The position numbers were made by a program, and so were the translations under genes. Of a stretch of 64,000 nt of DNA, positions 4,093 through 61,500 are shown one piece after another (the stretch's first letter is position 1; each line of letters opens with the position of its first letter). The stretch covers positions 6,990,889-7,054,888 of the forward strand of contig OZ037772.1 of assembly GCA_964035545.1 (NCBI GenBank). The letters are read 5' to 3'. Source of the stretch: Bugula neritina (Eukaryota > Animalia > Bryozoa). The notes under the pieces were generated by a model, which searched no databases, had not been told where the DNA came from, and was given only the letters and a program-made list of their open reading frames with translations.

Positions 4093-7000
4093 TCAGTTCT
4101 CCTCATACTGCACTTCAAACAGGCGCAGCTTCTGATCACCCCAACAAGGTACAGTCAATATGCCATCTTTAAAGCAGATTATTCCAACTAACTTTGGCAA
4201 TTTGTCATGAACCAGCTTTTTGAGTAAAGTACCTGTAAAATACAAAGAATATATTTTTCAGGTTGCGTAAGCCATGCAGTAGTCTAAGCATTTCTGTAAT
4301 TTCTAAACCCAATTTTTCATTATGATAGCTTCTTCATGTTTTGACTTGCTGCAGAGATTTTGTTTGATACTGTGATATTTTTATGTTAAGGACATGAATC
4401 AAAGGTAGAGGTGGATTCTTGATTTTGCTTAAAATAAACATTTTTATATAAAAAATATCACCAACATATGTAGCAGCTCTGTAGCATTTGCTATGAGTTA
4501 TCTGAATGACTTCAAATTAGTATGAGAGAGTAAATTACCCTCAGGTGAGATGATGTAAACAGCTTTGAAATCATCTGTTGCACCAACGTAGATGAGACCA
4601 TTAGAATCTGTACAGACACTGTATCCATTTTTTACACCATCACATGTCCAGACTGTAGTCAGCTTTTTATTCTCTACTTTGTACTTTATCAGTTTATCTC
4701 TACCAGCTCCTAGCAGATGACCATCTGGTAGAAAGTGTAGACCAACTGGATACACGTCAGGATGAATAGTCTCTGTTTGTTTAGTAATGAAGTCATAGAT
4801 GCTCAGCTGCTTAGTATCTGGATTCTTCACCACAACATATCTGTCAGAGACTGCCATTACTGCAGCACCATCACCTGTTCTATTAAACTGAAACAGTTGT
4901 TGGCTCTTTGTGACGTCACTAGCTAAACACATCTCTACCTTAGATATGCCATCTTCTCTGTGTAGAATGAATGCATTCTGAATAGTCTCAATTACCCCTG
5001 TTACTACCTTCTCACTTGTACTGTATTCACTCATCTCATTACCATCTCTACTCAGTAACTGTATTCCATTTCCAGTACCTATGAGTATGTCACCATCTTG
5101 TCTGTGATTGGCTGAGTAACACCAATCACTTGTCTCATGTTCAGATATGAATGTCAGTGAAGAAGGAACTGTTGTCAGACTGATGTTTAGTAGTTTACTT
5201 CTGTCCTCACCTTCAATATACTCGTATGATGTAAAACTGGTCATGTATGTATGTATGTATGCATCTGACAGGTCATTCTTATGCAAAATCATTTTGCAAG
5301 CTTATTTTAAATTTCTTTATTAAACTAGCAACTTTTACAAATAATAGTTTAACTTAGTTTTTACAGCGTGTTTTTAGAAATTATTGTGCAAATTGAAAGC
5401 CGCCTACAGTCTTAGCATTATATTGAAATCTATAGAAAACTGAAAACATCACTGTGACATTGTTGTATTATAGTATATTTTTGTTTTATATTATCCTTCT
5501 CATATAGCAGTAACTAAGTTAAATTTTTATTAATCTGCATCTGTTTTTGGTTACATCGACAAAGAATTTGGTTCATAAAAAATTTTGTCCATGTTTATTT
5601 TCGCTACCATTTTTTTCTAGTTTGTTTAGTAAATTATTGTCCACGTATCTACCAGAATATGGAGGGGGAGAAAGAAAATATAATTCACAAACAATATACT
5701 TTATAACACTATGACTAAATTAAAGCATTTTGAAACGAAGCAGATTTTCCGGGCATACATGCATCCTCATATTAGTTTTTGAAGAAAAACAACTTTTATA
5801 TACCTCAGAATGGCAAAGCATATGCATCCTCCCATTAAAAATTAAAAAAGACAACCTATGTAGCCCAGAATGGTAAAATAATAGTTTTCTGTGTTGACAG
5901 CTTACCTGTGTGTATCAGAGTTGGTGGATCAGCAAGTTCACAATCATCCAGCTTATCTGCCTCATGTTTGTCCAGCTCTTCTGCTATTCTCTTTTTCTGC
6001 CTGATCTGCTCAGTCACATGGCCATCTTTTAGCAGACGATGGATCTCAGCTTGTGTCTTCTCCAACCCATCTTCTTTTGTCATCAGCTTGGTGTGAAAGC
6101 CTTCAACCTTGGCTGTCATTTTTTCTTTGTGGTTTCTAACTTTGTCTATCATTCCTTGACTCTCCAGCCTTATTTTTTGTATCTGCATAGAATTTATAAC
6201 CAATTTTTTACCATTTCTAATTGTCAACTGATTTCCAGAACATTGGGCAAAGAATTCAATGTTGAGAATAACCATTATATTATTGTCTCTCAAATACACA
6301 AAGCACAAAACTTCATATAGGGGTTTGTAAATAGTGAATACAACCATATCTAAAATGTCATGCAATCTGGTTAAATTTCTGGCATGTTTTTTGAAAACTT
6401 GTTTAGTAGATTCCCACATTGCTTAAACTCATGAATGTTTTATTGCTTTGAGAAGGCTTATAATCTTACTATAGTATGATTTGCCATTAGGTAACTCTTT
6501 GTTATGAAGAGAACATTTATTTTTATATTGAAGTACTTCCATAAAATAATTCCATAGAATGACTGTACCCACCATCTCATCTCTAACTTTTTCTATCTCT
6601 GCTGCCATGGCTCCACATTTCTCTCCCTGAACATCCAACTCTTTCCATGCCTTCTTGTCCAGGGAATACACTTTATCTATTTTTTGTGAAACTCTCTCCA
6701 GCTTCCCTCTGAGATATTCATTTACTTCCACTTTCAGGGATGTAAGAGACTTGAAGTCATGTTGACCTCCATCTGAAATGTACAGCAATATTTTATCACA
6801 GTGCTTTTTTATTAATGACTGTATACATGAAAAGCTATATCTTACTCTATTTTTGACCAAAGTATACAATATGGTGTAATAAAGTTTTTGTTTTAGCTTG
6901 GATAATATGCACAGTTTTAGGGTTGTATATATAGATTGTACTAAAAACACTCTGAATAGTAAAGACAATTTTAACTAGAAAGAGTAAGCAAAACAACCGA

Positions 7001-9192
7001 TTTCAAAATGTGTTCTTTTCAACACAAAGAAAAACACCAGAACAATGTTTTCATCTTTTTGAAATACTTATTTTTAATCTTAGCCATTTACAAAATAAAA
7101 GAGAAAGAACATTTTTTTATATTCCTTTTTTTCAGGAAGCCAAAACTATGCTACTCAGGAAGTGTGAAGTGTTATAATGAATATCTCCCTTGTGTTAGCC
7201 ACAAAATATGAAATATGCCTCTATGGCACCCCTAAACATAGCTTTCCTTTCTATGATAATAAGGACCAAAAGCTCTAGCTACTTTTAAAACTCTGGCAGA
7301 TTTTGCTCGTGCATCATATGAGATTTAGTATGCTCTAAGTAAATACTTGACTATTTTTCAAAGTACAGATAATACAGACATTTCTTATAACTCAACTAGG
7401 TACTTTTATCAGCTTTTTAAAATTCATCATTATATACTGACATTCAACGTGGAGTAGTTAAAGTAACTGAAGAACTTCACATGTGTTATAGTCAGCTCAA
7501 TGAATACAGCTAGTGATACTGTAAGAAAGACCAAATAGCACTTCAACGTCTGTGGTTTACTAGCAAATGCTCATTAACAGGTAATCTAGAATAATTAACT
7601 TTCCTAAATAATTGATAGGGTACTACAACATTACCTGTGCAGTCTTCTCCATCAATCTCACACTCAACGCAGATCAGTTTGTCACACTTCTTACAAGCTA
7701 TCACCAGAACCTCTTTATGATGTTCACATGTTGGTTTATTAAAGTTTGTTGGTGAGCTCTTGTAGATATCAATGCCTACAACTTTGTGAGCCTCACCAAG
7801 AATTGTCTTATGGTCCTACAGCAATAATAATATAAAAAGCGACTTAAAATAAGATATTTACAATGGTAAAACTATAAAAGAATCAAATTCATTCATACCT
7901 GCGCATATACTGGCATATACATACATCAAAACCTGTACTAGCGTGTTATTGAAGTCACTCGTTGATATTGTCTATGAAGCAAGTGGAACATGCATAACTA
8001 ATTAATATTCTACATGAATCAATTTGGAGATGCAGTAGTTGAACTATACCTGCTGATGTTGAGTACAGAACATAACTTCACACTTCACACAGTAGCATAC
8101 AGCTATTTGACCTTGACATTCATCAGCTGTGCAGTACAGAGTACCAGAGTCACCAGATTCAATGGTAACCTTTGGCAGACCTTCAATCTCCAGTGAGTCG
8201 TAAACTTTCCTGTAACATATTATTGAGTTTAACTGTACAGCTTTCGGACAGTTGTGTGTGCATGTACAGGTCACGTTATATATAATGTTTCGGAAATAAC
8301 ACCTCATCCTATAATCGCTTGTTGACGGTAATTGTTTAAAATGAAAACTTCTGACAAGGTGCGTTACTTCAAATCACTCCATATAATTATACATCTCAAT
8401 CCGGGAAAATTGGGTGGAGTAATTGAATAAATATCAATAGAGCATAACTGTTTTTAATCAGGACTTATCAGATACTTTTATATCATTTTCTCAACTGCTA
8501 CATCTCTCTTAAGGAAGTTCTAAAACTAGACTGCAGCGTCTCGTAACATCATTTATATATAGAGTTGAAGAGTCACTTTTTCTTAATTATGTTTCAACTT
8601 GTTATTGTTTTTTTATCTGCTGCAATTCACTTGTTGGGTTTGTAATTTACCCGAATAAAGTAATTATTATAATATATTTGATTCAAACACACAAGAAACT
8701 ATCTCTCAGGAAAAAAAATCACCAAAACTAGCAGTTAACTTTTAGCAAAACTTTTCGTAAAAAAACAAAAAAACTTTAAAAACCTAACTCCGCAGTTAAT
8801 CTTAAACAAACGCAAAACAAATTTGAAAAATTAGTGTGACACAGCAAAATTGAATTTAATAAAACTTTCTATAAAAAAGATATCTAATGAATATTATTGC
8901 AGTTAAAAAAACTTTTTTTCATTTTCTCAACCAACACAACCAGCAATGTTTTTTCGATTCTTTTATTTTGTAGTTGTCCACGTTTACTTTAGAGTATTGT
9001 GTAGATTATACTTTTTACTCACCCACAAGTTTTAGTAGGGCATGTCACAGTTTTATGTTTACTGTAATGTCCTTGAATACAACTCAAACAGAATACATGC
9101 TGACAAGGCAGCTCTCTTGGATCTCTCATGTCATCTCTCTTAGAGACACAATAACCACACTCATACCATTCTGGTAGTTTCTGGGCAGCCAT
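4093..9192 (-). CDS. TRIM gene A: RING-Bbox-Bbox-coiled coil-NHL-like beta-propeller E3 ligase, 599 aa, intact
   Basis: Exons 9023-9192, 8050-8209, 7635-7815, 6573-6772, 5906-6182, 4539-5210, 4093-4232. All introns GT-AG with compatible phases (2,0,1,0,1,1); total 1800 nt. RING CGYC..CQH..CLSC..CPTKTC; B-boxes CTADEC..CVKC..CTQH..H..H and CEHH..CKKC..CVEC; heptad-rich exons 4-5; six beta-blade repeats (e.g. YPVGLHFLPDGHLL, YSVCTDSNGLIYV) ending LRLFEVQYEEN*. Confidence 0.9.
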
Positions 9193-12893: not shown

Positions 12894-13038
12894 CATGATT
12901 ATATTACAATCTATCAACTTTCAGTAATCTAATTAGCAAGTGATTTAATTGCTTGCCCTTGAAGTAAAAATCAACCTAAGTATGTAATATGTGACAGTAT
13001 TCAATGCGTAGTAATAAAGTAAGTACGTTTTGTAATGT

Positions 13039-13945
13039 TTATTCACTCCAGCAAGGAGAAGCTAGTACGCCGTCTTCTATACTGATTGCACTATTTATAA
13101 CTCTTGGCAACTTGTCATGACTAAGCTTTTTTAGTGAGACACCTGTAAAATATAATCAAGAAATTGTTGTAAGCAATCGATCAATATTCTCTTAGAAAAT
13201 CATAGAGTATGTATAATCAGAGGTATAAAATCTGGTTATATAATGTCAATGCATTGATAATCCTCTTTTGTAAACTATCAACAACACATAATATGTGTTG
13301 TTGATAGTTTACAAAAGAGGATTATCAATGCATTGACATATTATATTTACAAGGCATAGGATGTTTTAATTTGGAATGTATTTTACAAATAACAAATGCA
13401 GTAAGTACTTTACATGTATTGTATATGTGTTAACGATGTTGTGTGAAAATGTGTGAAAATTTCAGGAATTTTCAAATTGATAAATGTTGCAGCAATAAAT
13501 TTGAAGTTTGAAAAATTTTAAGTTTATCTCTTTTTTTGCTAATTAAGTTGGATGGCCGTATTCAAATCACTACTTAATAGATCGAAGCTTTATCCACAGG
13601 AGAGATAATGTAGATAGCTTTTACATAGTTAACTGCACAAACATAGATAAGCCCATTAGAATCCGAGCAGACTCCACTGCCTTTGTTCAAACCATCACAT
13701 GTCCAGACTGTTGTCAGCTTTCCATTCTCTACTTTGTACTTTATCAGTTTGTTTCTACCAACTCCTAGCAGATGACCATCTGGTAGAAAGTGTAGACCAA
13801 CTGGATGCACATTAGAATAAATAGTCTCTGTCTGTTTAGTGATGAAGTCATAGATGATCAGCAGTTTAGTATCTGAACTCTTCACCACCACATGTCTGTC
13901 GGAGACTGCCGTTGTTGATGCACTAGTGCCTGTTTTAATAAAATG
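13039..13945 (-). pseudogene. Orphan TRIM propeller fragment: 3' half of exon 6 (about 13594-13945) plus exon 7 (13039-13142)
   Basis: Translates AVSDRHVVV..YDFITKQTETI..HPVGLHFLPDGHLLG..YIISPV. The donor is mutated GT to AT. Exon 7 (GVSLKKLSHDKLPRVINSAISIEDGVLASPCWSE*) has a premature TAA. Confidence 0.85.
13243..13339. repeat. Perfect palindrome, 48-bp arms with 1-nt spacer
   Basis: 13243-13290 is the exact reverse complement of 13292-13339. Confidence 0.95.
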
Positions 13946-14175
13946 CAACTTATAATACTCTTCTGGCCTGTAAGAGGGTATGTAAAGTTACTCATGAAGT
14001 TTGTTTATGACATCTTGTTTTTTATAAAAACATTTCTTTTAATTTTACTGAATAAAACCAGGTTATGCAACCCGTAACATTCAGATAATATAATGTTATA
14101 TGTCGATCAACGTCAAAAAACTATTTATTTGATACTAGAAACAATTGTGGAAAAGCATTTGAGTGGAATACGATA

Positions 14176-14692: not shown

Positions 14693-17600
14693 TATATATA
14701 TATATAAAGCAATTATTACTTTCTTATAATATGTTAATAGCATTTTGATAGGTTTTTTTCTGACAATAATGATGAATTGTGTCATTCCTTAGAAATGTTA
14801 CACTAATTTTCAACATAATTAAGCTGTTATTTATTATGTTAGTTGAAATATTAATTCATAAACAACAAATAGTTTCGCAATCGTGAGGAGTTTATTAGGA
14901 TATAATACTTTATTGACATAGTATAAATCACGAGCAAATGATGAAACATTTTTAGGCATTGCAATTGGACATATACTCACGGTGTAATATTATAAAACAA
15001 ATTTGGTATTAAAAGAATCTTTAAAATGCTTAGTAATTATAAGTATTACAATATGTTACATTAAGATATGCATATACACTTATAGGCATTACGAATTTAT
15101 AGTGATACATGAATTATATAAGATGTAATAATGATACTACATTTACTTTTTATATAATCATAAACATATTGTTATTTTAGTTAAAGGGCGAAAGGCTTTA
15201 AAAAGCTACATACACAGATGTGCAGTTTCATGGCAAGATGGAATTATTTTTAAAGTACTATATATAAGTCAAATAACCAATGTGCAATAATCAGCAATCA
15301 ACAGCTAGTTCAATTGACTACTTCAAACATGTTCAGGTTGTTATTTTGAAGAGATACAGCTTCCTGTCATCCCAACCAGGTACAGCCAGTATTCCATCTC
15401 TGATACTTGGTTCTCCGGCAAATACAGTTGGTAACTTATCATGAGTCAGTGTCTTGAGAAGGCCATCTGTTTAAAAAAAGCATAAAATACAGTGGTAATG
15501 ATGTTGAATTACACTAAGTTTTATACAGCAAAATAAAAACATCTGCTACATTATAGCAATTTACTCTAGGAACCAAGAATTATATTATCCATTCAACGAA
15601 AGTTTGATATGTTACATAAAAAGAGTATTGAGTACATTTGAGCCACTAATTTTCATACTATAGTAATTATTGATATTAGCAAAATTAGTGTTATTTCCGA
15701 CTTAAGTTTGGCTCAAAGCTCATATATCTAATACACTTTAATTTATCCATCTCTTGTATTCAGGGGCTCTCACTTGTTTCTACATATTTTTTCTATTATA
15801 CCTGAATAATATATGCTAATTGATTTTTATTATAAACCGTACCTGATGGAGAAAGGATGTGAAGGGATTTCAAACTTTTTCCAGAAACATAGATGAAACC
15901 ATTAGAGTCTGCACAGACACTGTATCCGTCTGTTACATCATCACATGTCCAGACTGTAGTCAGCTTCCCATTCTCTATTTTGTACTTTATCAGTTTACCT
16001 CCACCAACTCCTAGCAGATGACCATCTGGTAGAAAGTGTAGACCAAAGGGATACACGTCAGGATGAATAGTCTCTGTCTGTTTAGTGATGAAGTCATAGA
16101 TGATCAGCTGTTTAGTATCTGGATGATCCACAACAACATATCTGTCAGTGACTGCCATTACTGCTGCACCATCACCTGTTCTATCAAACTGAAACAGTTG
16201 TTGTCTCTTTGTGATGTCACCAGCTAGACACATATCTACCCTAGATATGCCATCTTCTCTGTGTAGAATGAATGCATTCTGAATAGTCTCAATTACCCCT
16301 GTTACTACCTTCTCACTTGTACTGTATTCACTCATCTCATTACCATCTCTACTCAGTAACTGTATTCCATTTCCAGTACCTATGAGTATGTCACCATCTT
16401 GTCTGTGATTGGCTGAGTAACACCCACCACTTGTCTCATGCTCAGATATGAATGTCAGTGAAGAAGGAACTGTTACTAGACTGACATTCAGCAGTCTACT
16501 TGTGTCCTCACCTTCAATATAATATGATGTAAAACTGGTCAAGTATGCTTCTGACTAATCATTCTTATGCAAAATCCTTTTACAAGCTTATTAGAAATTT
16601 ATTTATTAAACTAGCAGCTTTTGCAAATAATAGTTTAACTTGGCTTTTACAGCGTGCTTTTAGAAATCATTGTCCAAATTGAAAGCCGCCTACAGTTTTA
16701 GCATTCTATTGACATCTATAGAAAACTAAAAACATCACTGTGTCATTGTTATATTACAGTATATTGTTGTTTTATATTATCATTGTCATATAGCAGTAAA
16801 TCAGTTAAATTTTTATTAATCTGCATCTGTTTTGGTTACATTGACAAAGAATTTGGTTCATAAAATATATTGTCCATGTTTATTTTTGTTACCATTTTTT
16901 CTAGTTTGTTTAGTAAATTATTGTCCACATATCTACCAGAACATGGAGGGGGAGAAAGAAAATATAATTCACAAACAATATACTTTATAACATTATGACT
17001 AAATTAAAGCATTTTAAATCGAGGCAGATTTGCCGGGCACACAAGCATTCTCATATTAGTTTTTGGAGAAAAACAACCTTTATATACTTCAGAATGGCAT
17101 AGGATATGCATCCTCCCATTAAAAATTAAAAAAACAACCTATGTAGCCCAGAATGGTAAAATAATAGTTTTCTGTGTTGACAGCTTACTTTTCTGTATAA
17201 GTGTTCAAGTTAGAACTCTGATTTTATATGTTTACTGATAAAGCGATGCAAAACATATATCTCATGAAATGAAGACAGCTTACCTGTGTGTATCAGAGTT
17301 GGTGGATCAGCAAGTTCACAATCATCCAGTTTATCTGCCTCATGTTTGTCCAGCTTTTCTGCTATTCTCTTTTTCTGCCTGATCTGCTCAGTTACATGAC
17401 CATCTTTTAGAAGTCGAGTTAACTCAGTTTGTGTTTTTTTTCAACCCATCTTCTTTTGTCATCAGCTTGGTGTGAAAGCCTTCAACCTTGGCTGTCATTT
17501 TTTCTTTGTGGTCTCTAACTTTGTCTATCATTCCTTGACTCTCCAGCCTTATTTTTTGTATCTGCATAAAATATATAACCAGTTTTTTACCATTTCTAAT

Positions 17601-26392: not shown

Positions 26393-27216
26393 TCAGTTTT
26401 CCTCATACTGCACTTTGAACAGGCGCAGCTTCTGATCACTCCAACAAGGTAGAGCTAATATGCCATCTTGAAAACTGATTACTCCAACTAACTTTGGCAA
26501 TTTGTCATGAACCAGGTTTTTGAGCAAAGTACCTGTAAAATACAAAGAATATATTTTTCAGGTTGCGTAAGCCTTGCAGTAGTTTAAGCATTTCTGTAAT
26601 TTTTAAACCCAATTTTTCATTATGATAGCTTCTTCATGTTTTGACTTGCTGCAGAGATTTTGTTTGATACTGTGGTATTTTTATGTTGAGGACATGAATC
26701 AAAGGTAGAGGTGGATTCTTGATTTTGCTTAAAATAAATATTTTTATATGAAAAATATCACCAACTCTGTAGCATGTGCGTTAGTTATCTGAATGACTTC
26801 AAATTAGTATGAAAGAGTAAATTACCCTCAGGTGAGATGATGTAAATGGCTTTGAAACCATCTGTTGCACCAACGTAGATGAGACCATTAGAATCTGTAC
26901 AGACACTGTATCCACCTGTTACATCATCACATGTCCAGACTGTAGTCAGCGTTTTATTCTCTAATTTGTACTTTATCAGTTTACCTTTACCAACTCCTAG
27001 CAGATGACCATCTGGTAGAAAGTGTAGACCATGTGGATACACATCAGGATGAATAGTCTCTGTCTGTTCAGTGATGAAGTCATAGATGATCAGCTGTTTA
27101 GTATCTGGATGATTCACCACAACATATCTGTCAGAGACTGCCATTCCTGCTACACCAAGACCTGTTCTATCAAACTGAAACAGTTGTTTTCTCTTTGTGA
27201 TGTCACCAGCTAAACA
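26393..27216 (-). pseudogene. Orphan TRIM propeller cassette: 3' ~60% of exon 6 (26826-27216) plus intact exon 7 (26393-26532)
   Basis: Open frame CLAGDITKRKQLFQFDRTGLGVAGMAVSDRY...YIISPE, with intact GT donor, AG acceptor and an A-type exon 7 ending VQYEEN*. The 5' end breaks off into a CCA repeat. Confidence 0.9.
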
Positions 27217-28400: not shown

Positions 28401-31400
28401 TTATTTTGTACTCGTATTTATTCTAAACAAACGCAGCATATTTTCACTCCAGCAAGATAAAGCTAATGTGTCATTTTTCATGCTGATGGCTCCTACTGAC
28501 TTTGGTAGTTTGTCATGAATCAGTTTTCTGACTTGTTTACCTACAAAATAATATTAATAACTTTGTTTTTGATAATTGCTTAACAGCATATTTTTCTAAT
28601 ACTTAACATAGTTAAAAGAGTAAGCCATAATAAATTGCAGTAAATATAAGTATATGCAGTTTTAAGAGAGATATCATTTGTAATACATACGCTCCTAATT
28701 TTCTCATAATTATATACATATAAAAGAGTAATACTATGTGATAATTTTAAAACATAATATTATACATTTAGTATCATATTATTGGCCACTCAGCGATACT
28801 CTGCAATATGTCCATAAAAATGTTTTATGTGTTTCATGAGTAAAATAAGAGCTAAAACTGACAGCAAAAACATGAACATTATTATGTGGTATAAAATAGA
28901 TAGTCTATATTTATACAAGTGAGTGAGTAAACACAGAGGTAGTATGCAGAAAGTAGGGATGGATATTTTACTGCAGCTTTAATTATATATTATATAATAG
29001 TATAAATTCAATGCAATAATTTTCAAAACATAATCTTACCCATTGGAGAGATAATGTAGCATGTTTTTATGTTGTCTGCAAAAACATAGATGAGACCATT
29101 AGAATCTGCACAGAGACTGTATCCATCTGTTACACCATCACATGTCCAGACTGTAGTCAGCTTTCCATTCTCGACTTTGTACTTCATCAGTTTACCTCTA
29201 CCAACTCCTAGCAGATGACCATCTGGTAGAAAGTGTAGACCACGTGGATACACATCAGGATGAATAGTCTCTGTATGTTTAGTGATGAAGTCATAGATGA
29301 TCAGCTGTTTAGTATCTGGATTCTTCACCACAACATATCTGTCAGAGACTGCCATTACTGCTGCACCAAGACTTGTCCTATCAAACTGAAACAGTTGTTG
29401 TCTCTTTGTGATGTCCCCAGCTAAACACATGTCTACCTTAGATATGTCACCTTCTCTGTGTAGAATGAAGACATTCTGAGAAGTCTCAATCACTCCTGAT
29501 ACTCTCTTCACACTTGTACTGTATTCACTCAGCTCATTACCATCTCTACTCAGTAACTGTATTCCATTATAAGTACTTATGAGTATGTCACCATCTTCTC
29601 TGTGATTGGCTGAGAAACACCACCCACTTGTCTCATGTTCAGATATGAATGTCAGTGAAGAAGGAACTAGACTGATGTTTAGTAGTCTACTTGTGTCCTC
29701 ACCTTCAATATATAATATAAAACTGGTCATTTATGTGTATGTATGCATCTGACTAGTCATTCTTATGCAAAATAATGTTGCAAGCTTATTTTAAATCTGT
29801 TAAATTGACTAGCAACTTTTACAAATAATAGTTTAACCTAGTTTTTACAGCTTGCTTTTCACATTATTATTCAAATTGAAAGCCGCCTACAGTTTTGGTA
29901 TTATCGACATTTATGAAAAATTTAAAACATCACTGTGTCATTTTTATATTATATTGTGGTTTTATATTATCATTGTCATATAGCAGCAACTCAGTTCAAT
30001 TTTTATTAATCTGTATCTGTTTTGGTTACATTGACAAAGAAGATTTGGTTCATAAAATGAAAATATTGCAGATGTTATGACTGCTAGTTTTCAGCAAAAG
30101 ATTCTAACATAGAGGTTGATCAAGAATGAAACAATTGTATTCCATATCACATGTGCTCATGCAGCAACAACACTTGACTATTATTGTACTCTATATACTA
30201 AAACATAATGTATACCCAAGTATTATTGAACACTAGTATAATGAGCACATTTTCATTGAGTGATATTGGTTTACTATAGAAAATGTTTAGCAGATTACTC
30301 ACGCGGCACTTGAGTTGTTATTCTAACACATCTTTAAGATTGTTAAACGTGTTTTTTTGCTTAGTTGAGCATATAATTTATGTGATAAGCTATAGTTGTA
30401 CACCATTACAGCTATACTAAAGATCAAGTGCTTTGTTGAATATTCTTTGCATGTATAAGTTTTGCATTACGTTTTCTGAGCTGCAAACATTCTGAGCAAT
30501 GACTATTTAACATAATTGAGATCATTATTTAAAAATCTGCAGGCTATATTATACACACTATATATTCTAATGTTTTGAACTATTTCTGTTTAAATTAATC
30601 TTTAGACAACAACTCTATAAATTTATTATATTATCTTACGTATTGTATAGTCTCCTTATAATAAACCACAAGTAACATATTATATTATATTGTAATTGTA
30701 AAGGTGTAAAAGCCATTTCTTTGTATACTTGTGCTCTCCAGGATTTGTGGTTGGCAAAGATTATAGTTTTTGTTGCAGCCATTTTTATACTGAGATACCC
30801 TTAATCAAAAATATCACAAATACAGTAATTGTAAATAGAGTGTCCGCTGCAGGAAACCAAAAGTCAGTAGAAATTTGTTTTTACTCGTTAATTTTGGTTG
30901 CATAAATTCCTGTAATTTAGATTTTATATTCCATAGACCAATATTTTAAACCATCTGAATTTATTATTCTTATCTGCATTTTGTTTCTGTTTACTTTATC
31001 AAACATAATTTATGTAGTTTTTTTGCCGGTCTACTATAGATTTGAATTATTTAAATTACTTTAAACATATCTACAACAAAGAGCAGTGAAAAAACTCTAT
31101 ACAGCACACTGACACCTTCATTTAGTGCAAATAAAATTTTGTATAAAAATACAAGCAAAACCTCATATTATTGTCTGATTTTGAAATAGTTGTAAGTCAA
31201 TAAAAATGTAAATCTTGTAGTTGTATCTCTCTTAACAGATATTGATAACAGAAACTGAAACTATGTTGCGGTTACTATAATTATATATAGCTAATTTTTC
31301 ACAGTCTACATAGAGTTTCTGAATCGATAATTATATATTAAATTTTATTACCATTCTTGCTATATAGTCTATTTAGTAAATTACTGTGAGGGACCTGCCG

Positions 31401-34400: not shown

Positions 34401-37400
34401 CCCCATTCAGGCTGCCATGTGGACAGAAGATGAAGGTCGAATTCTCTTGAAATACATTATGGAGGGATGGCCTAGGACAAAGGATATCGACCCTTCTATG
34501 AAGCAATTTTGCACGTTCAGAGACAGCTTGACCACAGTTCAAAGAGTAGTATTTTTTGAAAACCGTCTATACATTCCCAAAGTCGAGAGAAACCGGGTTT
34601 TGAAGAAAATACACGATGATCACCAAGGAGAAACTAAATGTATTCGTAGGGCAGTTGATGTAGTTTGGTGGCCTGCCATGACAGCTGATATTAGATCGTT
34701 AGTGAAAGGCTGTTCCAAGTGTGGAGAATTTCGATTGAAACCTCGAGAGCCTCTGGTCTGTTCCTCTTGGCCTGAGAGACCATGTTGGGGCTTAGCAGTT
34801 GACCTATGTACCAAGGATGAACGAACATATTTAGTGGTGGTAGATTACTACAGAAGGTACATTACGGTTAATGAACTCAGTGACGCAAAAACTATAGTTT
34901 CCAAGCTCGAAACACTTTTCTGCTTGCTAGGCATTCCTAATACATTAGTCAGTGATAATGGACCACAATTTGTGTCCGATAGGTTTCAGTCTTCCCTGTC
35001 AAAATGGGATGTTAAACACATAAGTAGTTCTCCGAAGTGCCCCCAGTCAAATGGTGAGGCAAAAAGAGCTGCTCAGACGGTGAAAGGCTTGATGAAGAAA
35101 ACTGTCAACATTCAGGCTGCACTGTGTGCGTACAGAAACACACCCTTGGCAAACGGGTACCCACCAGCTGAGCTTGTGTTTGGTCGGTCTCTGAATTCTA
35201 TGGGTGTCATGCCAAACAAAAGCGTTAACTTGAGCCGGCTTCGACAGTTTGAGGCAGGTCAACGAAAGGCACACGCGTTTTATTATAACAGGAGGCATCG
35301 GGCTAGAGAAAGGGAACCAATGGAAGTAAGTCTGGCGATAAAAATTAAAGATGGAAGTCAGCTGAAATTTGGAGTTGTAATTGCGACTAAAGGCAAAGAA
35401 ATTGTATCGTCAAATGATTCGGGAGTATTGCTACGTAGATATCGCTTTCAAATATCTAAAGCAGCTGACATTTTGTTACCGACAGCAGAAGATTCTACTG
35501 TTGGTGAAAGCCAGTCCCCAGAGCAGTCCAACACTCGCCAGCCGTTTGAAGTATCTCCCTCTACACATGTGACCGGTCTAGAAACTATGGATGAAGATAG
35601 TCAATCGTCACCGACTGGGGAACCTGATAAATCTACTCGAAGAACTAGGAGTGGTCGGACAATATGGCAGCCAGAAAGGCTGGACTTATAGCCATAGTTT
35701 GGCTGCCTACTGGTTTTTTTTTGTGTCAAATTTTTTTTTCGTGTCTCTTCGATTGTCTTAAGCACTAGGAGTGCTCAAAAAAAAAAGAACAGAGAAAGGA
35801 AACATTTTATTGAAATTGAAAATTTAAAAGGACTAAAAAAAATAATAAAGGGGCTGTTGATATGGAATTTACTATTCAATTCTATGGCATTCTAAAAGTG
35901 AAACACCAAGCTTGGAGGGAGGATGTAATAGAATGTCGCTATTGGCTAACGGAAATGGCGAGATAAAATAGACAAAACAACATTCTTGGGTCCAACGCTG
36001 AAATTGCACGGGCGCACGAGATCTGCTAACTAGACTTGCCAGATAATTAAAGCATCTTTTCACAAAAGCAACCTTATATATACCCCAGAATGGCAAAAGA
36101 ATAGTTTCATGTATTGACAAGTTACCTGTGTGTATCAGAGTTGGTAGATCAGCAAGTTCACAATCAACCAAATTATCCGCATCATGTCTTTCCAGCTCTT
36201 CTGTTATTCTTTTCTTCTGTCTGATCTTCTCAGTCACATGACCATCTTTTAGAAGACGAGTTAACTCAGCTTGAGATTTTTTCAACCCATCTTCTTTTGT
36301 CATCAGCTTGGTGTGAAAGCCTTCAACCTTGGCTGTCATATTTCCTTTGTGGTTTCTAACTTTGTCTATCATCTCTTGACTCTCCTGCCTTATTCTTTGT
36401 ATCTGGAATTGATAATCAATTTTTTCACCATTTCTTGTCAGCTAATTTTCGGAACAGTGAGCAAAGGATTTGATGTTGACAATAACCATTATATTGTTGT
36501 CTCAAATATATAAAGCATGAAGCTTCATATAGAGATTTGTAAATAGTGAATACAATCATATCTAAAATGTCATGCAATCTGGTTAAATTTCTGGCATGTG
36601 TTTTGAAAACTTGTCTTGTAGATTTCCACATTGCCTAATATCATGAATGTTTTTTTGCTCTGAGAAGGCTAATATTCTTACCATGATATGATTTGCCATT
36701 AGGTAATTTTTTGTTATAAAGAGAACAAGGATTTTATATTAAAATACTTCCAGAAAATAATTCCATAGAATGACTGTACCCACCATCTCATCTCTAACTC
36801 TTTCTATCTCTGCTGTCATGACTCCACATTTCTCTCCCTGAACATCCAAATCTCTCCACGCCTTCTTGTCCAGAGAATACACTTCATCTATTTTCTGTGA
36901 TACACTCTCCAGCTTACCTCTGAGATATTCATTTACTTCCACTTTCAGAGATGTAAGAGACTTGAAGTCATGTTGACCTCCATCTAAAATGTACAGCAAT
37001 ATCTTATCACAGCGTTTTTTATTAATGACTGTATACATGAAAAGCTATATCTTACTCTATTTTTGACTAAAGTATATATGGTGTAATCATGAAATAAAGT
37101 TTTTGTTTTAGCGATGATAATATGCACAGTTTTAGGGTTGTAGATTGTACTTAAAACACTCTGAATAGTAAAGACAATCTTAACTAGAAAGAGTAAGCAA
37201 AACAACCGATTTCAAAATGTGTTCTTTTCAACACAAAGAAAAACACCAGAACAATGTTTTCATCTTTTTGAAATACTTATTTTTAATCTTAGCCATTTAC
37301 AAAATAAAAGAGAAAGAACATTTTGTTATATTCCTTTTTTTCAGGAAGCCAAAACTATGCTACTCAGGAAGTGTGAAGTGTTATAATGAATATATCCATT

Positions 37401-44262: not shown

Positions 44263-46233
44263 CATCATCCAAGGCCCACGGTAGCTTCCGCCACCCGTGG
44301 CCTCACGCTAATCCTGTCCGGGAAAGGACTCGGAGGGTAACAGAAGAGACCTCCACAGAGTCTGCCGGTACCAAGTGGCAGGCACCACGGAGATCTCAGA
44401 GACCGAAAGGTCTACCCAATCCTCCTGCCATGCCACTCAAAACCCGGATGGAGCTAGAAGAAACCGGATGGCAGGCACCTCGGAGATCTCGGAGACCGCA
44501 AGGTCTACCCGATCCCCCAGCCTGGCCACTCCGTAACCGGTTCGCGAGGTTGCCCGAGGAGGTTGTGGAGGAGGATTCAGCTTACTCGCAAGAGTACCCC
44601 AAGCTACCCTCCCGACCTCAGAAAACCCCCGTTGTCTCTAAGACGAAGAGGAGGCCCGCTGTGCGAACCCAAGTTGTGTCTCCCCCAGAGACTGACCGCT
44701 CCAGGAGCACCCAGTCGTACGGAAGCAGCTACTTCCTGCCCGGAAAGATTTCGGGTGAAGCTGCCACATTCCTACTGGATACTGGGTGCACTACCAACCT
44801 GCTGAGTAGGCGTCTCTTTGACACTCTTGGTGCTTGAGAGCGGGCGAGCCTCGAGACGTATGAAGGTGCGCATGGTACGTTGGCGGACGGATCATGCATC
44901 CCTGTTTACGGCGTCATCTCACTGCCTGGACGCGTCCGTGATCAAGCAATTCACGAGACGTTCATAGTCGGCCAGCTGAAGGAGGACGCCATCTTGGGAA
45001 TGCCCTTTTTGGAGAAACACCAGTGTCACATTGATTTCCAGAAGTCGGTGGTGTTTATGGCTAGGAAGGAACTTGTCTGTGTTGACAAGTTTGGCAGGCC
45101 CTTGGTGGGCGGAGTCCAGGTAGTGCGGGACTGCACGGTTCCGGGGAGATCCCAGGCGACTCTCCGATGCAGAGTCAACTGCAAGGGGATCGCCGGCCTG
45201 GGGATGGTTAAGGGAACGCACGGAGGCATCCGACTAGCAAACAGCTTGAATCGGCTAGATTGTCGGCAGTGCAGTGCAGTGCATCAACCCCTTCACGGAA
45301 CCTGTCCGATTATCGGCCGGAGCGCTGGTGGGGAAGTACCACTCCATCCAGGAAGCGGACGTGGGTCCGGCACTGGAGACAGTGGCCGACACCCAGGGAA
45401 ACCCCCCTCACACCAGACGAGGAGCAGTCCCGGAGCACCTGGCTGACCTGTATGGCGGAGCATGTGGAAACTGTACGAGTAGTACTGAACGCCAAGTACT
45501 GGCTCAACTACTCGCGGAGTACAGTGATGTCTTCAGTCGTGGCGATGGAGACATGGGGCTGACTAAGGTTATCTCCCACGAGATACCTCTGGCAGCCGGC
45601 ACCACTCCCATCAGGCAGCCTACCCGACGTCTAGGCCCGGAGAAGGAGAAAGAGGTGAGCCGACAGGTACAGGATCTTCTAGACCGGGATCTGATTGAGC
45701 CTGCCCACGGTGCGTGGAGCTCTCCAGTGGTCCTGGTCAAGAAGAAGGATGGTAGCTGGAGATTCTGCGTGAACTACCGCAGACTCAACAGCGTTACCAT
45801 CTAGGACGCCTACCCTCTCCCACGGAAAGATGAGTCTCTAGATGCCCTCGTGGGTAGCAAGTACTTCAGTACTTTGGATCTGCTTAGCGGGTACTGGCAA
45901 GTGCCCTTCAGTCCTGATGCCCAGGACAAAGCAGCATTCATTACTCGCGACGGGCTCTGGAAGTGGAAAGGACTGCCATTCGGACTAACGTCCGCTCCGG
46001 CAACATTCCAACGGCTCATGGAGCAAGTCCTCAGTGGGTTACACTAGAAGACCTTCCTCATCTATCTGGACAATGTCATTGTCATCTCCCCAGACTTTTC
46101 GACTCATGTCAGTTGTCTGCGGGAGGTCTTTGACCGTCTCCGGGCAGCTGAACTGAAGCTGAAGCCCTCCAAGTGCGCACTCCTGCAGGAAGAAGTCACG
46201 TACCTTGGCTATGTGGTTGGCCGTGATGGGGTT

Positions 46234-46989
46234 CACAGGATAGTTAAGGGCATCCTCACTAAGAATATCATAAATGTCTCTCAAAATATAGTTCAGGTTC
46301 TTGAATAATATTGCTCTGCGGGTGGCATGCGTGTTGCCTACTTGTAATTGTTTAGCCTAAGATTAAACTACAACCAATAAGCAGCAACCTTCGTTAGGGC
46401 TGCGTTATCTATCAACATTCCATTATTGGTGCTACATAAACAAAGTACAAAGCAAGCTATTCATTATAGCCTGCCAGTTAGCTAGCCTGTAATTATTATG
46501 TAGGCGCCAATATCTTCTCATCCCTACGTGCTCAGTGAAGCGTGAAGTGCTGCTCGCTGCTAGTTTCTTATGAGAAAATTTGGCATTTTCAGTGTATAAA
46601 TCACCAATTTATGAGCAATCTAGCAGAGTTATTGAAAAAAGAAAAAAACTTACACTGGAGAAATATCTCAGGATTCCAGCAGTGCAATTTTTATTCAGAT
46701 ATCATGCTTTGCTGCTGAGATATTTTACTGGTACTGAAAAGTCAGCTTTTCAGGCAAAATTGGCCAAAATTGAGCAGTTTTTTGTCTATAACTTCGCAAA
46801 AAAAATGAAAATTGAAATTTCCAAAAAATTTACACTGGAGAAAAAGAAGATCTACAACATAGTTTTTAAATTTTGACTCTAGCACAATTAGGTGAGATTT
46901 TATTTTACTGTTACTGAATTCTTATATGATTACAATGCAAACCTCAGCAAGGCAGTTGCAGCTAAAAGGTTGCCCTTAACTATCCTGTG
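46234..46989. mobile_element. 756-bp non-autonomous DNA transposon nested in the Gypsy RT (CAC termini, 2-bp TT TSD; CACTA/CMC-like)
   Basis: Perfect 19-bp TIR CACAGGATAGTTAAGGGCA / TGCCCTTAACTATCCTGTG. Removing the element restores RT codons D-G-V-A-T-D. Confidence 0.9.
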
Positions 46990-49900
46990 TTGCTACCGAT
47001 CTAGAGAAGGTACAAGCTGTGAAGGAGTGGACTTTCCCCCGTGACCTCCCTGAGTTGCGTGCATTCCTGGGCCTAGTAGGGTACTACCGGCAGTACATAC
47101 CTGGTTTCGCAGGAGTGGCTCAGCCGTTAAATCGGCTGACCGCAAAGGGAGTCCGGTGGCAGTGGACACAAGAAGAGCAGCAGGCATTCGACCACCTCAA
47201 GCAACAGCTAATAGAAGCGCCAATCCTGGCGTATCCTGATCCAGCCAAGGAGTACATCCTGGACACCGACGCCAGCAACCACAGCGTGGGAGCCGTCCTG
47301 TCTCAAGTCCAGGGTGGAAGTGAGGTGGTCGTGGCTTACTATAGCAAGACTCTTGCGGCCGCCAAGAAGAACTACTGCACCACTAGGAAGGAACTCCTAG
47401 CAGTAGTCAAGGTGGTCAAGCACTTTCGGCCATATCTGTATGCGAAATCGTTCCATTTGCGAACAGACCATGCATCACTGATATGGCTGTGTAAACGTGC
47501 AGAGCCCTCGAGCCAGGTGGCTCGTTGGCTAGATATTCTTGCCGAGTTCTCTTACCGGATAGAGCACCGTGCAGGCCAGAAGCATGGGAACGCCGACGGC
47601 ATGAGCCGCCGGCCGGTAGAGGACTGTGAGTAATGCCTGCACATTGAACAGCGGGACGGGGGACCTGCTCGCCTTGACGTGGAAACGGAGCTAGTGGAGG
47701 GCACCGCCTACCGGTGGGAGCACGGTCATCTTTGGACCGAAACCCACCAGGACGGTTTCCAGGCGCTCCACGCCAACCCTACTCTGCACCAGAACGTCAA
47801 GGAGCTGTGTCGACTCCAGGAGACGCTACCCGGCGCGGTAGCGGACATCTTCCGGGCCAAGAAGAAGGGCCGACGACCTAGCGAGGAACAGCAGCGGCAG
47901 GGAGACGTTGAGTTCCAACTCCTCTGTCGTCGCTGGGATGCCCTCAAGGTCAGTCCTGGTGGCCTCCTGATGATAACGTTAGCAGCAGACAACCGCCAGC
48001 AAGAGAGGGACCACGTCGTCTGTCCACGCGCCCTCCGTCGGGAACTGATTTGAGACACCCATAAGCAGGCTCATGCTGGAGTCAGTCGGGTCATCAGGTG
48101 TCTGCGGCTGCGTTGGTATTGGCCCGGAATGACTCGGGGCGTACGACTGCGGGTACGGCAATGCGAGGTCTGCCAAGCTAGCAAGCATGGCCGCCCCACG
48201 GAAACTACTGGTCGACGCCGGCTGTACGCTGGTCCACCGTGGCAAGTAGTGGCGGTAGACCTCGTCGGGCCTATGCCGTTATCCGCCAGAGGGAACACCT
48301 GAATACTGGTGCTCACGGACCACTTTACCCGGTGGGCGGATGCTCTGGCTATTCCAGACGCAACCGCCACCACAGTGGCCCGGACCCTAGACCAAGATGT
48401 GTTCTGTTACCTCGGCTTGCCCGAGCAGATACATACGGACCAGGGCGCCCAGTTCCAGTCCCAGCTCATGGGAGACCTCTGCCGGATATGAGGGGTGAAC
48501 CAGAGTCGGACCACCCCATATCACCCGCAAGGGAATGGAGTCGTCGAGCGGAACAACAGGTAGTTGGGGGACGCCCTCAGGAGCCTGCTCCTTGGTCGAG
48601 GTCAGGAAGAATGGGATGTGGTGCTGCCGCAGATCATGCGGGCCTACCGCAGCACACCACACTTCGCCACGCAGGAGACCCCAAACTTCCTGATGCTAGG
48701 CCGAGAGACGCGGGTCCCGGAACACCTGACGTACCATGTTCCTGCCCCCGAGTCACCGGTACACGAATATGTGGAGGGTCTGCTGCACATCATGGGCAAA
48801 GCTCATGATGCGCTGCGCACCCACCAGTGGCAGACCCATACAGAGGACTCAGAGGAGCCCCCGTTGTACCAGGTGGGAGACTGGGTCTGGATGGTGAGCT
48901 ACCGTAGGCGACGGGGACAGTCGGCTAAGCTTCAGCCCAAGTTCGTCGGTCCCTACTGCGTAGTGGAGGTGCTGCCCAACCACACGTACCGTGTGGAGCG
49001 CTCTGGACAGGTCTCCGTCCAGAGCGAGCAGCGCCTCAAACCTTACCATGCCAGCCCAGACGCGGTGGGTCAGGCTCCACCCCTCCTGGAGCCCCACCGT
49101 CAGCCCAACCGTCGAGGACGGGCCACCCAGCCCCGAAAGGTGGAAATTGTGGTTCCCAGAGAGTCGGACCAAGAGCAGGCCGCCTTGATAGAGCAGCTGG
49201 AGCGACAGCAGAGAGAGGAGCGGGAACAGGAACAGCGGCATACCCTAGGACCACCACCCTCCCTGGGGGAGGACACCCCCACCCCCGTGTTGGGTAAAGG
49301 CGGGGACCCCCCTACTAGGGTAGCCCAGGAGACACCAACACCACCGGTGCCTGTTCCAATTGAGAGGAGCCAGCGGTCAAGAAGATCCCCCAGGTATCTG
49401 GCAGACTATGCTGTAGGGCACCTGGAGTGGCCCCCTCATAAGGACAACCCACCCAGTACGGACGACCACCCCATCTTGGCTGGAAATTCCCTCCATCACC
49501 CCAGAGAATTCCACCAAGAAGAAGATTTCACACAGCTAGCACGTAAGTTACAGCTTAAGTTGAATTCTAATCCTGTGATACCCCTAAGTATAATTTAAAC
49601 ACTGTTATTCAGACACTAGCATCAGCTATGGGAATTACCTCGCCAGATACCCAAACAGAGGAGCGTAAGGATACCGAGGAGGCCAGTTGATCCGACTCCC
49701 CTCCCTCACCAGCTCCTGTTTTAGCTCCCCGCAGCCAGCAGGACGACACCCCCTCTTCCGAGGTGTGTTTCGCCAGCGTTAGTGGCCCTGACCCCGAACC
49801 GGTTGAGCTCCAACTCACAGCTGGGGAGGAGCAGGGCACTCTATACCGCGACCACCTCGCAGGCAGAGACGAAGAGGAGTCTCCAATACTGGCAATGCCT

Positions 49901-50300
49901 CGGGCCCTGGTCGCCCGCCAGTATTGGATATCTGGAGCACCAGGCAGCCAGATAGAAGAACAGACTCAGCCAACCCACCCACAATTGCCCCGTCACGGGC
50001 AGAGTATGGCACTTTCTTACCGAGAGTGCGTCCTTCCTGGATAGCGCAATCGAGGCCTGGTCCCGTATCTTCGACCCAAGCACAGAAGAGATAGAAAGCC
50101 TGGTGCACCACCTCCAATGATAAAACCGGACAATTAGGGGCTGCTGGCAATAGCCACCCGAACTGTATATATTATCGTGTTACGTGTGATTAATCATAAT
50201 ACTTTTCTGTTAACCGCATATTTTTCTACGTTGTGTTTCATTTTTTTTGTGGAGTCTTGTTTTGTTATCGAAAAGGGGATGCTTTTCGATGGGGGGAGAA

Positions 50301-55103: not shown

Positions 55104-55361
55104 CTGTAACATATCATTGAGTTAACTATGCAGCTATAGAACATTTTTGTGTGCAGGTCACTTCATATATCATATTTCAGAAGTAACAGTTCATCCTGTA
55201 ATCACTTGTTGACTTTAATTGCCTAAAATTGGAACTTCTGAGAATATTATTCAAATTACTCAGTATAATTATACAACTCAGTCATGGACATTTGGGTGTA
55301 GCAATTGAAAATTCTTCAATAGAGAATAACTATTTTAATACGCACTTATCAGATACTTCTC

Positions 55362-58554: not shown

Positions 58555-61500
58555 TCAGGTTGTTATTTTGAAGAGATACAGCTTCCTGTCATCCCAACCA
58601 GGTACAGCCAGTATTCCATCTCTGATACTCGGTACTCCGGCAAATACAGTTGGTAACTTATCATGAGTCAGTGTCTTGAGAGGAGCACCTGTTTATTAGA
58701 TACACAAAATACAGTAGTAATGATGTTGAATTACACTAAGTTTTATACAGCAAAATAAAAACATCTGCTACATTATAGCAATACTTTATGAACCAAGAAT
58801 TATATTATTCATTCAATAAAAGTTTGATATGTTACATAACATTTCAGTAAAATTAGTGTTATTTCCAACTTAAGTTTGGCTCGAAGCTCATATATCCAAT
58901 ACACTTTAATTTATCCATCTTTTGTATTTAGGGGTTCTCACTTGTTTCTATATATTTTATCTATAATGCCTGAATGATATATTCTAATTGATTTTTATTA
59001 CAAACGGTACCTGATAGAGAAATGATATGAATGGATTTCAAGCTTTTTCCGGAAACATAGATGAAACCATTAGAATCTGTCCAGACACTGTATCCTTCTT
59101 TTACATCATCACATGTCCAGACTGTAGTCAGCTTTCCATTCTCTACTTTGTACTTTATCAGTTTATATCCATCAACTCCTAGCAGATGACCATCTGGTAG
59201 AAAGTGTAGACCAATTGGATACACATCAGGATGAATAGTCTCTGTCTGTTTAGTGATGAAGTCATAGATGATCAGCTGTTTAGTATCTGGAGGATTCACC
59301 ACAACATATCTGTCAGAGACTGCCATTACTGGTACCTTGTTATTTGTTCTATCAAACTGAAACAGTTGTTGTCTCTTTGTGATGTCACCAGCTAGACACA
59401 TCTCTACCTTATCTATGTCACCTTCTCTGTGTAGAATGAAGACATTCTGAGGAGTCTCAATTAGTCCTGTTACTCTCTTCTCACTTGTACTGTATTCACT
59501 CAGCTCATTACCATCTCTACTCAGTAACTGTATTCCATTATCAGTACCTATGAGTATGTCACCATCTTGTCTGTGATTGGCTGAGTAACACCACCCACTT
59601 GTCTCATGTTCAGATATGAATGTCAGTGAAGAAGGAACTAGACTGATGTTTAGTAGTCTACTTGTGTCCTCACCTTTAATATATAATATAAAACTGGTCA
59701 TTTATGTGTATGTATGCATCTGACTAGTCATTCTTATGCAAAATAATTTTGCAAGCTTATTTTAAATTTATCAAGTAGACTAGAAACTTTTACAAATAGT
59801 AGTTTAACCTAGATTTTACAGTGTGCTTTTCAAATTATTATTCAAATTGAAAGCCGCCTACATTTTTGGTATTATCGAAATTTATAAAAAATTTAAAACG
59901 TCATTGTGCCATTTTTATATTATATTGTGGTTTTATATTATCATTGTCATATAGAAGTAACTCAGTTCAATTTATATTAATCTGTATCCGCCTTTGGTTA
60001 GATCGAAAAAGAAGATTTGGTTCATAAAAAGAAATTATTGCAGATGTTATGACTGCTAGTTTTCAGCAAGAGATTCTAACATAGAGGTTGATCAAGAATG
60101 AAACAATTGTATTCCATATGACATGTGCTCATGCAGCAACAACACTTTACTATTATTGTACTCTATGTTTCAAAATATATTGTACTCAAGTATTATTGAA
60201 CACTAGTGTAATGAGCACATTTTCATTGAGTGATATTGGTTTACTATAGAAAATTCCTATATATAGCAGATCACTCACATGGCACTTAAATTGTTATTCT
60301 AACCCATCTTTAAGATTGTTAAATGTGTTTTTTTGCTTAAGTGAGCAGTTAATTTATTTAATAAGCTTTGCTTGTAAATATAATTGCAGTTAGTAAACCT
60401 CAAGTGCTTTGTTGGATATCGTTTGCGCATGCATAAGTTTCACATTAAATTTTCTGGGCTGCAAAAATTCTGAGCAATGATTATAATTTATTTGAGATTA
60501 TTATTCAAAAATATGCAGGCTATATTATTTTATATACGTTATATTATAATGTTTTGAACTATTTTTGTTTAAATGATTCTTTAGACAAAAAACCTATAAT
60601 ATTTTTATATTATCTGACGTATTGTATAGTCTCCTTATAATTAACCACAAGTAAATTATATTATACTCTCATTCTAAAGATGTATTAGTCCTCTCTTTGT
60701 TTACCTGGGCTATCTCAGGCTTGGTGGTTGACAAGGATAAAATTTTGTTGCAGCCAATTTTATACTGAGATACTCTTAATCAAAAATCTCACAAATATAG
60801 TAATCTTAAATAGAGTGTCAGCTGCAGGAAACCAAAAGTCAGTAGAAATTTGTTTTTACTCGTTAATTTTGGTTGCATAAATTCCTGTAATTTAGATTTT
60901 ATATTCCATACACTAATATTTTAAACCATCTGAATTTATCATTTTTATCCGCATTTTCTTTCTGCATGTTTACTTTTTCAAACATAATTTATGTAGGTTT
61001 GCCGGCCTACTACATAAATCTGAACGATATAAATGACTTACTTTAAACATATCTAAAACAAAGAGCAGTGAAAGAATTCTATACAGCAAACTGACACCTT
61101 CATTTCGTGCAAATAAAATTTTGTATAAAAAAACAAGCAAAACATCATATTATTGTCTGATTTTGAAATAGTTGCAAGTCAATAAAAATGTAAATCTTGT
61201 AGTTGTATCTCTCTTAACAGATATTGATAACAGAAACTGAAACTATGTTGTGGTTACTATAATTATATATAGCTAATTTTTCCCAGTCTACATAGAGTTT
61301 CTGAATTGATAATTATTAATTTTTATTACCATTTTTGCTATAGTCTATTCAGTAAATTACTGTGCAGGACCTGCCAAAATATGGAGGGGAGAAATAAAAT
61401 ATACATTACTCACTAACAATATGCTTTATAACTTTATGACTACAAAGCACTTTGAAACAAAGCAGATTTGCATTGCATACCTCCTATTATTATTGGGAAG

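Follow-up and report, generated by a model that had tools for sequence, protein, structure and literature searches.

Does a small set of hypervariable residues, scattered through otherwise similar tandem gene copies, reflect selection for diversity on one protein surface, or loosened constraint and exchange among copies? The question is raised by a 64,000-nucleotide (nt) stretch of the bryozoan Bugula neritina (assembly GCA_964035545.1, contig OZ037772.1, positions 6,990,889 to 7,054,888, forward strand; hereafter, the window). The window is AT-rich eukaryotic DNA (~35% GC), in which motif search and in-frame extension located six copies of a propeller exon (exon 6) of TRIM-like genes, all on the minus strand. 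Four copies are full (genes A, B, C and E) and two are partial (orphans o26, near 26.8 kb, and o13, near 13.6 kb). An original prediction held that hypervariable codons at the top-face loops of an NHL propeller, set within an invariant scaffold, form one surface resembling complementarity-determining regions (CDRs) and under diversifying selection, and it proposed recombination-aware site models. Our analysis indicates that the propeller top face is probably undergoing diversification on a conserved E3 ubiquitin ligase chassis, with a few apex residues changing faster than neutral and gene conversion reshuffling the loops.

Fold and variable face of the propeller

The fold was modelled on a family member from the protein databases (P0021, 281 residues, exon 7 included). 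The AlphaFold (AF2) model (predicted local distance difference test score, 86.8) contains 24 strands arranged in six blades. In an exhaustive structural alignment with VIA-align against 48,161 chains, Brat was the best match (Z 26.1; root-mean-square deviation [rmsd] 2.6 Å over 241 residues). Mei-P26, TRIM2, Lin41 and NHL-2 made up the rest of the top five, and TRIM71 ranked seventh. The TRIM-NHL matches scored Z 24-26, with rmsd values of 2.6-3.1 Å for Brat, Mei-P26, TRIM2 and NHL-2 and 5.5 Å over filamin plus NHL for Lin41, while other six-bladed propellers scored about 23, about 3 Z units lower. A Foldseek search of the PDB returned only seven-bladed WD40 propellers (template modelling score about 0.6) and was set aside as uninformative for the fold. 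At the sequence level, Pfam NHL (PF01436) was not matched at E values up to 1, only weak generic propeller matches being found, and a 60-member family profile reached the NHL domains of TRIM3 and Thin in the PDB at non-significant E values of 0.6-0.8. Thus, the modelled propeller is six-bladed and NHL-like by fold but not by sequence, in which no NHL repeat was recognisable; the NHL assignment of the original prediction holds in the first sense only.

Strands were assigned from the repeat P-x-G-hhhh..DG-hhhhh-turn-hhhhh, together with an N-terminal strand that closes blade 6. This topology places the d-a loops at residues 41-44, 79-83, 125-131, 164-170, 206-209 and 246-257, and the b-c turns at 61-62, 101-102, 144-149, 185-186, 226-229 and 270-272 (P0021 numbering). 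In Brat, the top surface, defined by the b-c and d-a loops, is where RNA binds (PMC4015489). All seven variable patches of the original prediction fall within or at the edge of the modelled d-a or b-c loops, consistent with their proposed placement on the top face. The strings that defined them were also exact. P[V/F/R/I/H/V]G is encoded by GTT/TTT/CGT/ATT/CAT/GTT in A, B, C, E, o26 and o13, respectively, and T[GDGAAV...], VVV[KN/DH/KN/NP/NH/KS], LLG[AGRD...]K, CD[GVKN...]G, IYV[GATDD...] and T[G/G/Y/D]NG were all recovered as described. Two further variable loops were found, at residues 42-44 (ETS[DW/GG/GW]) and at residue 83 (EK[V/V/R/R]V).

We compared positional entropy among 54 family members over positions 32-235; positions of database proteins beyond residue 235 represent intron read-through and were excluded. 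Mean entropy was 1.34 bits in the top loops, 0.54 in the bottom loops and 0.56 in the strands, an approximate 2.5-fold excess for the top (Mann-Whitney, p = 4e-6 versus bottom loops and p = 1e-8 versus strands). The top loops, which make up 43 of the 204 positions, hold nine of the ten most variable ones (hypergeometric p = 3e-6). Variability within a loop usually peaks at one residue, either the final one ahead of strand a or the initial one of the b-c turn. Independent GenBank and JGI contigs vary at the same positions.

Recombination and selection in exon 6

For codon-level analysis, the six window copies were aligned with 12 genomic copies obtained by exact-protein look-up, giving 18 sequences; for further paralogue DNA, neither a search for related loci nor a 26-nt exact DNA probe of metagenome contigs gave a match. 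Exon 6 is a recombination mosaic. A scan of the GARD type (genetic algorithm for recombination detection) favoured five segments by the corrected Akaike information criterion, segment-specific topologies gained 237 log-likelihood units over a shared topology with free branch lengths, and the Hudson-Kaplan minimum number of recombination events (Rmin) was 40 in 678 nt. A pairs with B in the 5' half, whereas the 3' tail and exon 7 unite A with o26 and B with E. The 3' module, which consists of the b5-c5 hairpin and exon 7, occurs as about five discrete types that are common to the window and GenBank B. neritina contigs. The 37 nt that follow the P-x-G codon are identical in all six copies. The scaffold as a whole is not invariant, contrary to what had been predicted: besides being a mosaic, it differs by 17-27 non-synonymous changes outside the top loops in each full-copy pair, with a ratio of non-synonymous to synonymous divergence (dN/dS) of about 0.5.

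Pairwise dN/dS was estimated by the tree-free method of Nei and Gojobori (NG86), pooled over a structure-defined partition. Among the 18 copies, the top loops gave a value of 1.53 (bootstrap 95% confidence interval [CI] 1.04-2.36), as compared to 0.46 for the rest of the propeller (0.46-0.50 overall); values for the RING plus B-box and for the coiled coil were 0.24 and 0.38, respectively. Intron divergence (0.08-0.18) is about equal to exon dS and served as the neutral baseline. Top-loop dN (0.15-0.33) exceeded the divergence of the upstream intron in six of six full-copy pairs. For cross-validation, sites were picked by their entropy in 36 proteins that do not overlap the codon set; at these sites, dN was 3-4 times flanking dS and 3.5-5.4 times exon-wide dS. 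For the hypervariable codons themselves, dS could not be used: where a codon has been hit several times, path averaging in NG86 inflates it.

Individual codons were assessed by a test that leans only lightly on trees. Strictly neutral codons were simulated along the trees of the segments, with the synonymous rate set to its fitted value, and compared with the observed codons for the number of amino acid states and for diversity. Codons 61, 128 and 170 exceeded neutral expectation at p <= 0.0002 and codon 83 at p = 0.0008, while codon 209 did so at p = 0.003 for state count and p = 0.0008 for diversity. Weaker signals were obtained at codons 144 (p = 0.002) and 186 (p = 0.006). All seven of these codons lie in top loops. 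When applied to four null data sets with heavy recombination, the test returned no site at p < 0.01, which indicates that it is conservative. The b5-c5 patch (IYV[...]) was not above neutral in this test, the tree of its segment being long and old, and residues 42-44 were flagged by tree-based site models only.

Site models fitted to the recombination segments were also positive. The likelihood-ratio statistic for M2a versus M1a was 66 with five segments and 26 with nine 25-codon segments, and 8 of 10 and 10 of 11 selected sites, respectively, fell in top loops. However, data simulated with recombination and without positive selection (20 independent genealogies, nine-segment pipeline) gave statistics of 3.8-37.6, with one in eight exceeding the observed 26. 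Because such null simulations reached 16-38, the M2a/M1a p-values are not to be trusted. Recombination inflates this likelihood-ratio test.

A number of results weigh against diversification of the top face. The chi-square p-values of the site models (5e-15 and 2e-6) were rejected as decisive evidence. The top-loop dN/dS among the six window copies was 1.16 (95% CI 0.68-2.08), indistinguishable from 1. A maximum likelihood (ML) partition on the five segment trees gave 1.71 for top loops versus 0.49 (p = 4e-7) under a shared synonymous rate, but this result was downgraded because freeing the top-loop synonymous rate reduced the value to 1.35 (p = 0.096 versus 1). A per-site test similar to fixed effects likelihood (FEL) reached p = 0.005 at codon 170 only, which fails correction for 226 sites. 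The face assignment follows strand topology, not measured distances. Finally, the array is partly dying, as gene B is frameshifted and o13 is decayed.

Some of these results would be expected if constraint on the top loops had merely been relaxed, so that they evolve at a dN/dS near 1 while conversion makes their flanks seem invariant and inflates tree-based tests. The window-only class value, the ML class test and the statistic of 37.6 reached by selection-free recombination nulls all agree with this explanation. Nevertheless, we regard it as unlikely: in a test that is conservative under recombination, four to seven codons had more amino acid states or diversity than neutrality allows, dN at the cross-validated sites is 3-5 times both the flanking and the exon-wide dS and clearly exceeds intron divergence, and the comparison of top-loop dN with the upstream intron points the same way in every full-copy pair. 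It is also conceivable, with a probability that we judge to be lower still, that old variants have been reshuffled by conversion while the scaffold was homogenised, in which case the excess in the loops would reflect deeper genealogies and not faster substitution. The Rmin of 40, the few discrete types of the 3' module, whose sites are not above neutral on their own long tree, and the reappearance of loop motifs such as NKVP in distant paralogues are consistent with such a history. Yet eight to nine states at single codons (61 and 170) would be hard to obtain from few cassettes, and keeping loops diverse amid homogenised flanks itself needs selection for diversity, making this account a variant of top-face diversification and not a neutral alternative to it.

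That the pattern stems from neutral decay of a pseudogene array, or from collapsed or misassembled paralogues, seems very improbable, even though gene B carries a +1 frameshift in an A-run, o13 has acquired a stop and lost its splice donor, and retrotransposons lie in and near the genes. The dN/dS values for the RING plus B-box, coiled coil and propeller core (about 0.5 for the last) indicate that the genes are constrained, exon 6 keeps an open frame in A, B, C, E and o26, and the independent GenBank and JGI contigs share the variable positions. Diversification of the top face thus remains the reading that we prefer. With respect to diversifying selection, the original prediction is supported at codons 61, 83, 128, 170 and 209, and more weakly at 144 and 186, but not at the IYV patch or by the class value of the six copies.

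Organization of the array

Compared with itself, the window shows paralogous genes arranged in tandem, with 78-97% identity that extends to the introns. With at least five genes and two orphan cassettes in 64 kb, the locus represents a lineage-specific tandem multigene family. Another family member contributes RING and B-box exons at 1026-1524 (minus strand), with its 3' part preceding the window start; the array therefore extends on both sides of the window. The RING exon of gene E lies past the window end, and no propeller exon of gene D (about 53037-55126) was found within the window. Coordinates of the annotated features are given in the table.

Table. Features of the TRIM-like array in the window (positions within the 64,000-nt stretch)
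Feature	Position	Strand	Remarks
Gene A, TRIM-like	4096..9192	-	Open reading frames, Pfam RING, splice sites from alignment
Gene A, RING exon	about 9019-9192	-	Pfam above cut-off
Gene A, B-box-like exons	about 8047-8193 and 7630-7704	-	Cys/His patterns
Gene A, coiled-coil-like exons	within 6429-6968 and 5856-6419	-	Charged heptad-like sequence
Gene A, exon 6	4539-5210	-	Propeller blades 1-5
Gene A, exon 7	4096-4238	-	Last blade
Gene A, codon 61	5071-5073	-	Hypervariable
Gene A, codon 83	5005-5007	-	Hypervariable
Gene A, codon 128	4870-4872	-	Hypervariable
Gene A, codon 144	4822-4824	-	Hypervariable
Gene A, codon 170	4744-4746	-	Hypervariable; P-x-G position
Gene A, codon 186	4696-4698	-	Hypervariable
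Gene A, codon 209	4627-4629	-	Hypervariable
Orphan o13	12997..13948	-	Decayed exon 6 fragment, 13598-13948; exon 7 relic with stop, 12997-13146
Gene B, exon 6	15843..16511	-	Codon 170 = TTT at 16045-16047; exon 7 at 15342-15470
Gene B, extra A in homopolymer run	17436..17446	-	Frameshift in coiled-coil exon 5
Orphan o26	26396..27216	-	5'-truncated exon 6 (blades 3-5), 26826-27216; intact exon 7, 26396-26536
Gene C, exon 6	29040..29702	-	Codon 170 = CGT at 29242-29244; exon 7 at 28419-28541
LTR (long terminal repeat) retrotransposon	31767..35691	+	Gag zinc knuckle, reverse transcriptase, RNase H, integrase; in intron 5 of gene C
Ty3/gypsy-like retroelement	44430..50044	+	49-60% GC; downstream of gene D
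Gene E, exon 6	59011..59673	-	Codon 170 = ATT at 59213-59215; exon 7 at 58564-58692

The RING exon of gene A matched Pfam zf-RING_UBOX (E 1e-7), zf-RING_2 and zf-C3HC4, each above cut-off, and it is conserved across A, B, C and the incomplete gene near the window start. Matches to B-box families were sub-threshold (zf-B_box, E 0.0075, 16.8 bits against a cut-off of 24.1; ANCHR-like B-box, E 0.13) in a scan that is weakened by the division of this domain among exons; Cys/His spacing is discernible in the translations of the B-box-like exons. The two coiled-coil-like exons matched no Pfam family. No filamin domain was seen in the family, unlike canonical TRIM-NHL proteins. Splice sites read off the alignment place both introns flanking exon 6 in phase 1.

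Database relatives formed 77 protein clusters, almost all of which come from Bugula neritina or metagenomes of this species, and the best was 83% identical. The closest proteins were annotated as hypothetical protein EB796_* of Bugula neritina or were encoded by contigs of B. neritina symbiont metagenomes. Contig depth at >=90% identity, determined in three runs of two studies, was 10- to 30-fold higher over exon 6 and the RING exon than over introns (for exon 6, in DNA runs, bin 4531-5238 versus flanking introns). As a rough guide, this excess fits dozens of copies with conserved exons. Contigs from one run, presumed to be RNA, covered exon bins only, exon 7 being without depth, and contained joints close to the boundaries between exons 5 and 6 and between exons 1 and 2. 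Since they were mostly 90-95% identical, these contigs derive from paralogues. Family members thus appear to be transcribed and to be spliced roughly as modelled.

The two orphans differ in their state of preservation. Orphan o26 begins at a GGT-rich simple repeat, and its frame is open and its donor intact. It carries the same 3' cassette type as gene A, and intron 6 of the two is 96% identical; o26 may donate sequence in conversion or act as an alternative 3' end. In o13, a stop immediately upstream of the start of homology closes the frame, and the splice donor has changed from GT to GA. A long (TA)n microsatellite lies directly upstream of o13 (12997-14100, minus strand). Partial or orphan propeller exons beside full genes were also observed in GenBank and JGI Bugula contigs (L004, 11843-11923 and 14549-14823; L014, 9605-10257), so that orphan cassettes recur in the family. 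The frameshift in gene B may be a pseudogene lesion or an assembly error in the homopolymer. Insertion of the LTR retrotransposon lengthens intron 5 of gene C to about 6 kb. Next to the Ty3/gypsy-like element is a fragment of a coiled-coil exon (44140-44262); because the two abut, the insertion may have broken a gene copy.

Two kinds of candidate regulatory motif were noted. The core GAAANNGAAAC, which resembles an interferon-stimulated response element (ISRE), occurs six times versus 0.78 expected, at 10946, 12769, 31251, 41636, 43475 and 61233. Some are situated 1.6-3.6 kb upstream of the A and C start codons, and others occupy corresponding places in intron 5 of C and of E. A palindromic kB-like motif, GGGAATTTCC, is located at 21181, 0.5 kb upstream of the gene B start codon. 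Paralogy may account for part of these sites, which would then be copies of one another. As sequence motifs, they hint at infection- or interferon-like induction.

Relation to known TRIM families

In our reading, the window holds one section of a large tandem family of Bugula genes for TRIM-type E3 ubiquitin ligases, each predicted to encode a RING, B-box-like zinc fingers, a coiled coil and a six-bladed NHL-like beta-propeller. Purifying selection keeps the ligase module, and the variable part is the top face with its 12 d-a and b-c loops. We propose the following mechanism. In each loop, roughly one apex residue would be replaced faster, or held more diverse, than neutral drift permits. Gene conversion or unequal recombination would exchange short tracts among copies and thereby create new loop combinations, while the 3' module (the blade 5 hairpin and exon 7, which encodes blade 6) circulates as about five old cassette types. 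The products may serve as germline-encoded surfaces for substrate or ligand recognition, mounted on an E3 chassis that the copies share.

Known cases of diversifying TRIM families involve the B30.2 domains of vertebrates. In the fish finTRIM, btr and trim35 families and in primate TRIM5alpha, a conserved N-terminal module is joined to positively selected sites in C-terminal recognition loops (PMC3137616). These proteins are tandem or multigene RING-B-box-coiled-coil ligases, and the Bugula family resembles them in its tandem arrangement, its RING and its putative B-boxes and coiled coil; unlike them, it carries a six-bladed NHL-like propeller in place of a B30.2 (PRY/SPRY) recognition domain. 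As for dN/dS above 1 in ligand-binding loops, which characterizes TRIM5 and finTRIM, five codons are positive in the neutral simulation and the cross-validated sites give values of 3-5 in Bugula, but the class value lies at 1.16-1.7, with marginal significance, and the M2a test is unreliable under recombination. An antiviral role has been shown for finTRIM and TRIM5alpha, whereas for the Bugula family it is only inferred.

The best structural matches, Brat, Mei-P26, LIN-41/TRIM71, TRIM2/3 and NHL-2, share the overall layout of RING, B-box, coiled coil and propeller that is predicted for the Bugula genes. Canonical TRIM-NHL proteins bind ligands, RNA in the case of Brat, on the b-c/d-a top face, but they are single-copy, conserved developmental regulators, and their RNA-binding top face is electropositive. 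The Bugula family, in contrast, has dozens of copies and no Pfam NHL match. Its top loops, with charge counted from sequence, range from -6 to +4 over 19 copies and are mostly negative, and they are its least conserved parts; a conserved, electropositive RNA-binding surface was thus not found. TRIM56 likewise combines a TRIM chassis with a C-terminal domain of NHL-like type, and one report describes an antiviral role dependent on RNA binding (PMC6623546). Unlike the Bugula family, TRIM56 is a single vertebrate gene, for which we found no report of a hypervariable surface or tandem expansion. By analogy with these systems, the Bugula top face may bind ligands and may have an immune or non-self role.

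More speculatively, and with appreciably less confidence than we attach to top-face diversification itself, the family could be a germline recognition repertoire of approximately 100 Bugula genes. In this scheme, an NHL-like propeller with twelve CDR-like loops would be attached to a RING ligase and diversified by apex substitution and by combinatorial conversion among paralogues and orphan cassettes. Such a repertoire would be a lophotrochozoan, propeller-based counterpart of TRIM5/finTRIM, directed at intracellular non-self, either viruses or symbionts.

Our literature search found no report of a TRIM family in which the face of an NHL-type propeller is the hypervariable part, and none on bryozoan TRIM genes. 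Bugula neritina, the best-known bryozoan species, harbours a bacterial symbiont with a defensive role. Should the top face prove to be a diversified binding surface, repertoire-type evolution would have recruited a second TRIM recognition fold, and the family would offer a tractable case of conversion-driven loop shuffling on a rigid scaffold. An innate recognition system would then also be indicated for Bryozoa, a phylum whose immunity is almost unstudied.

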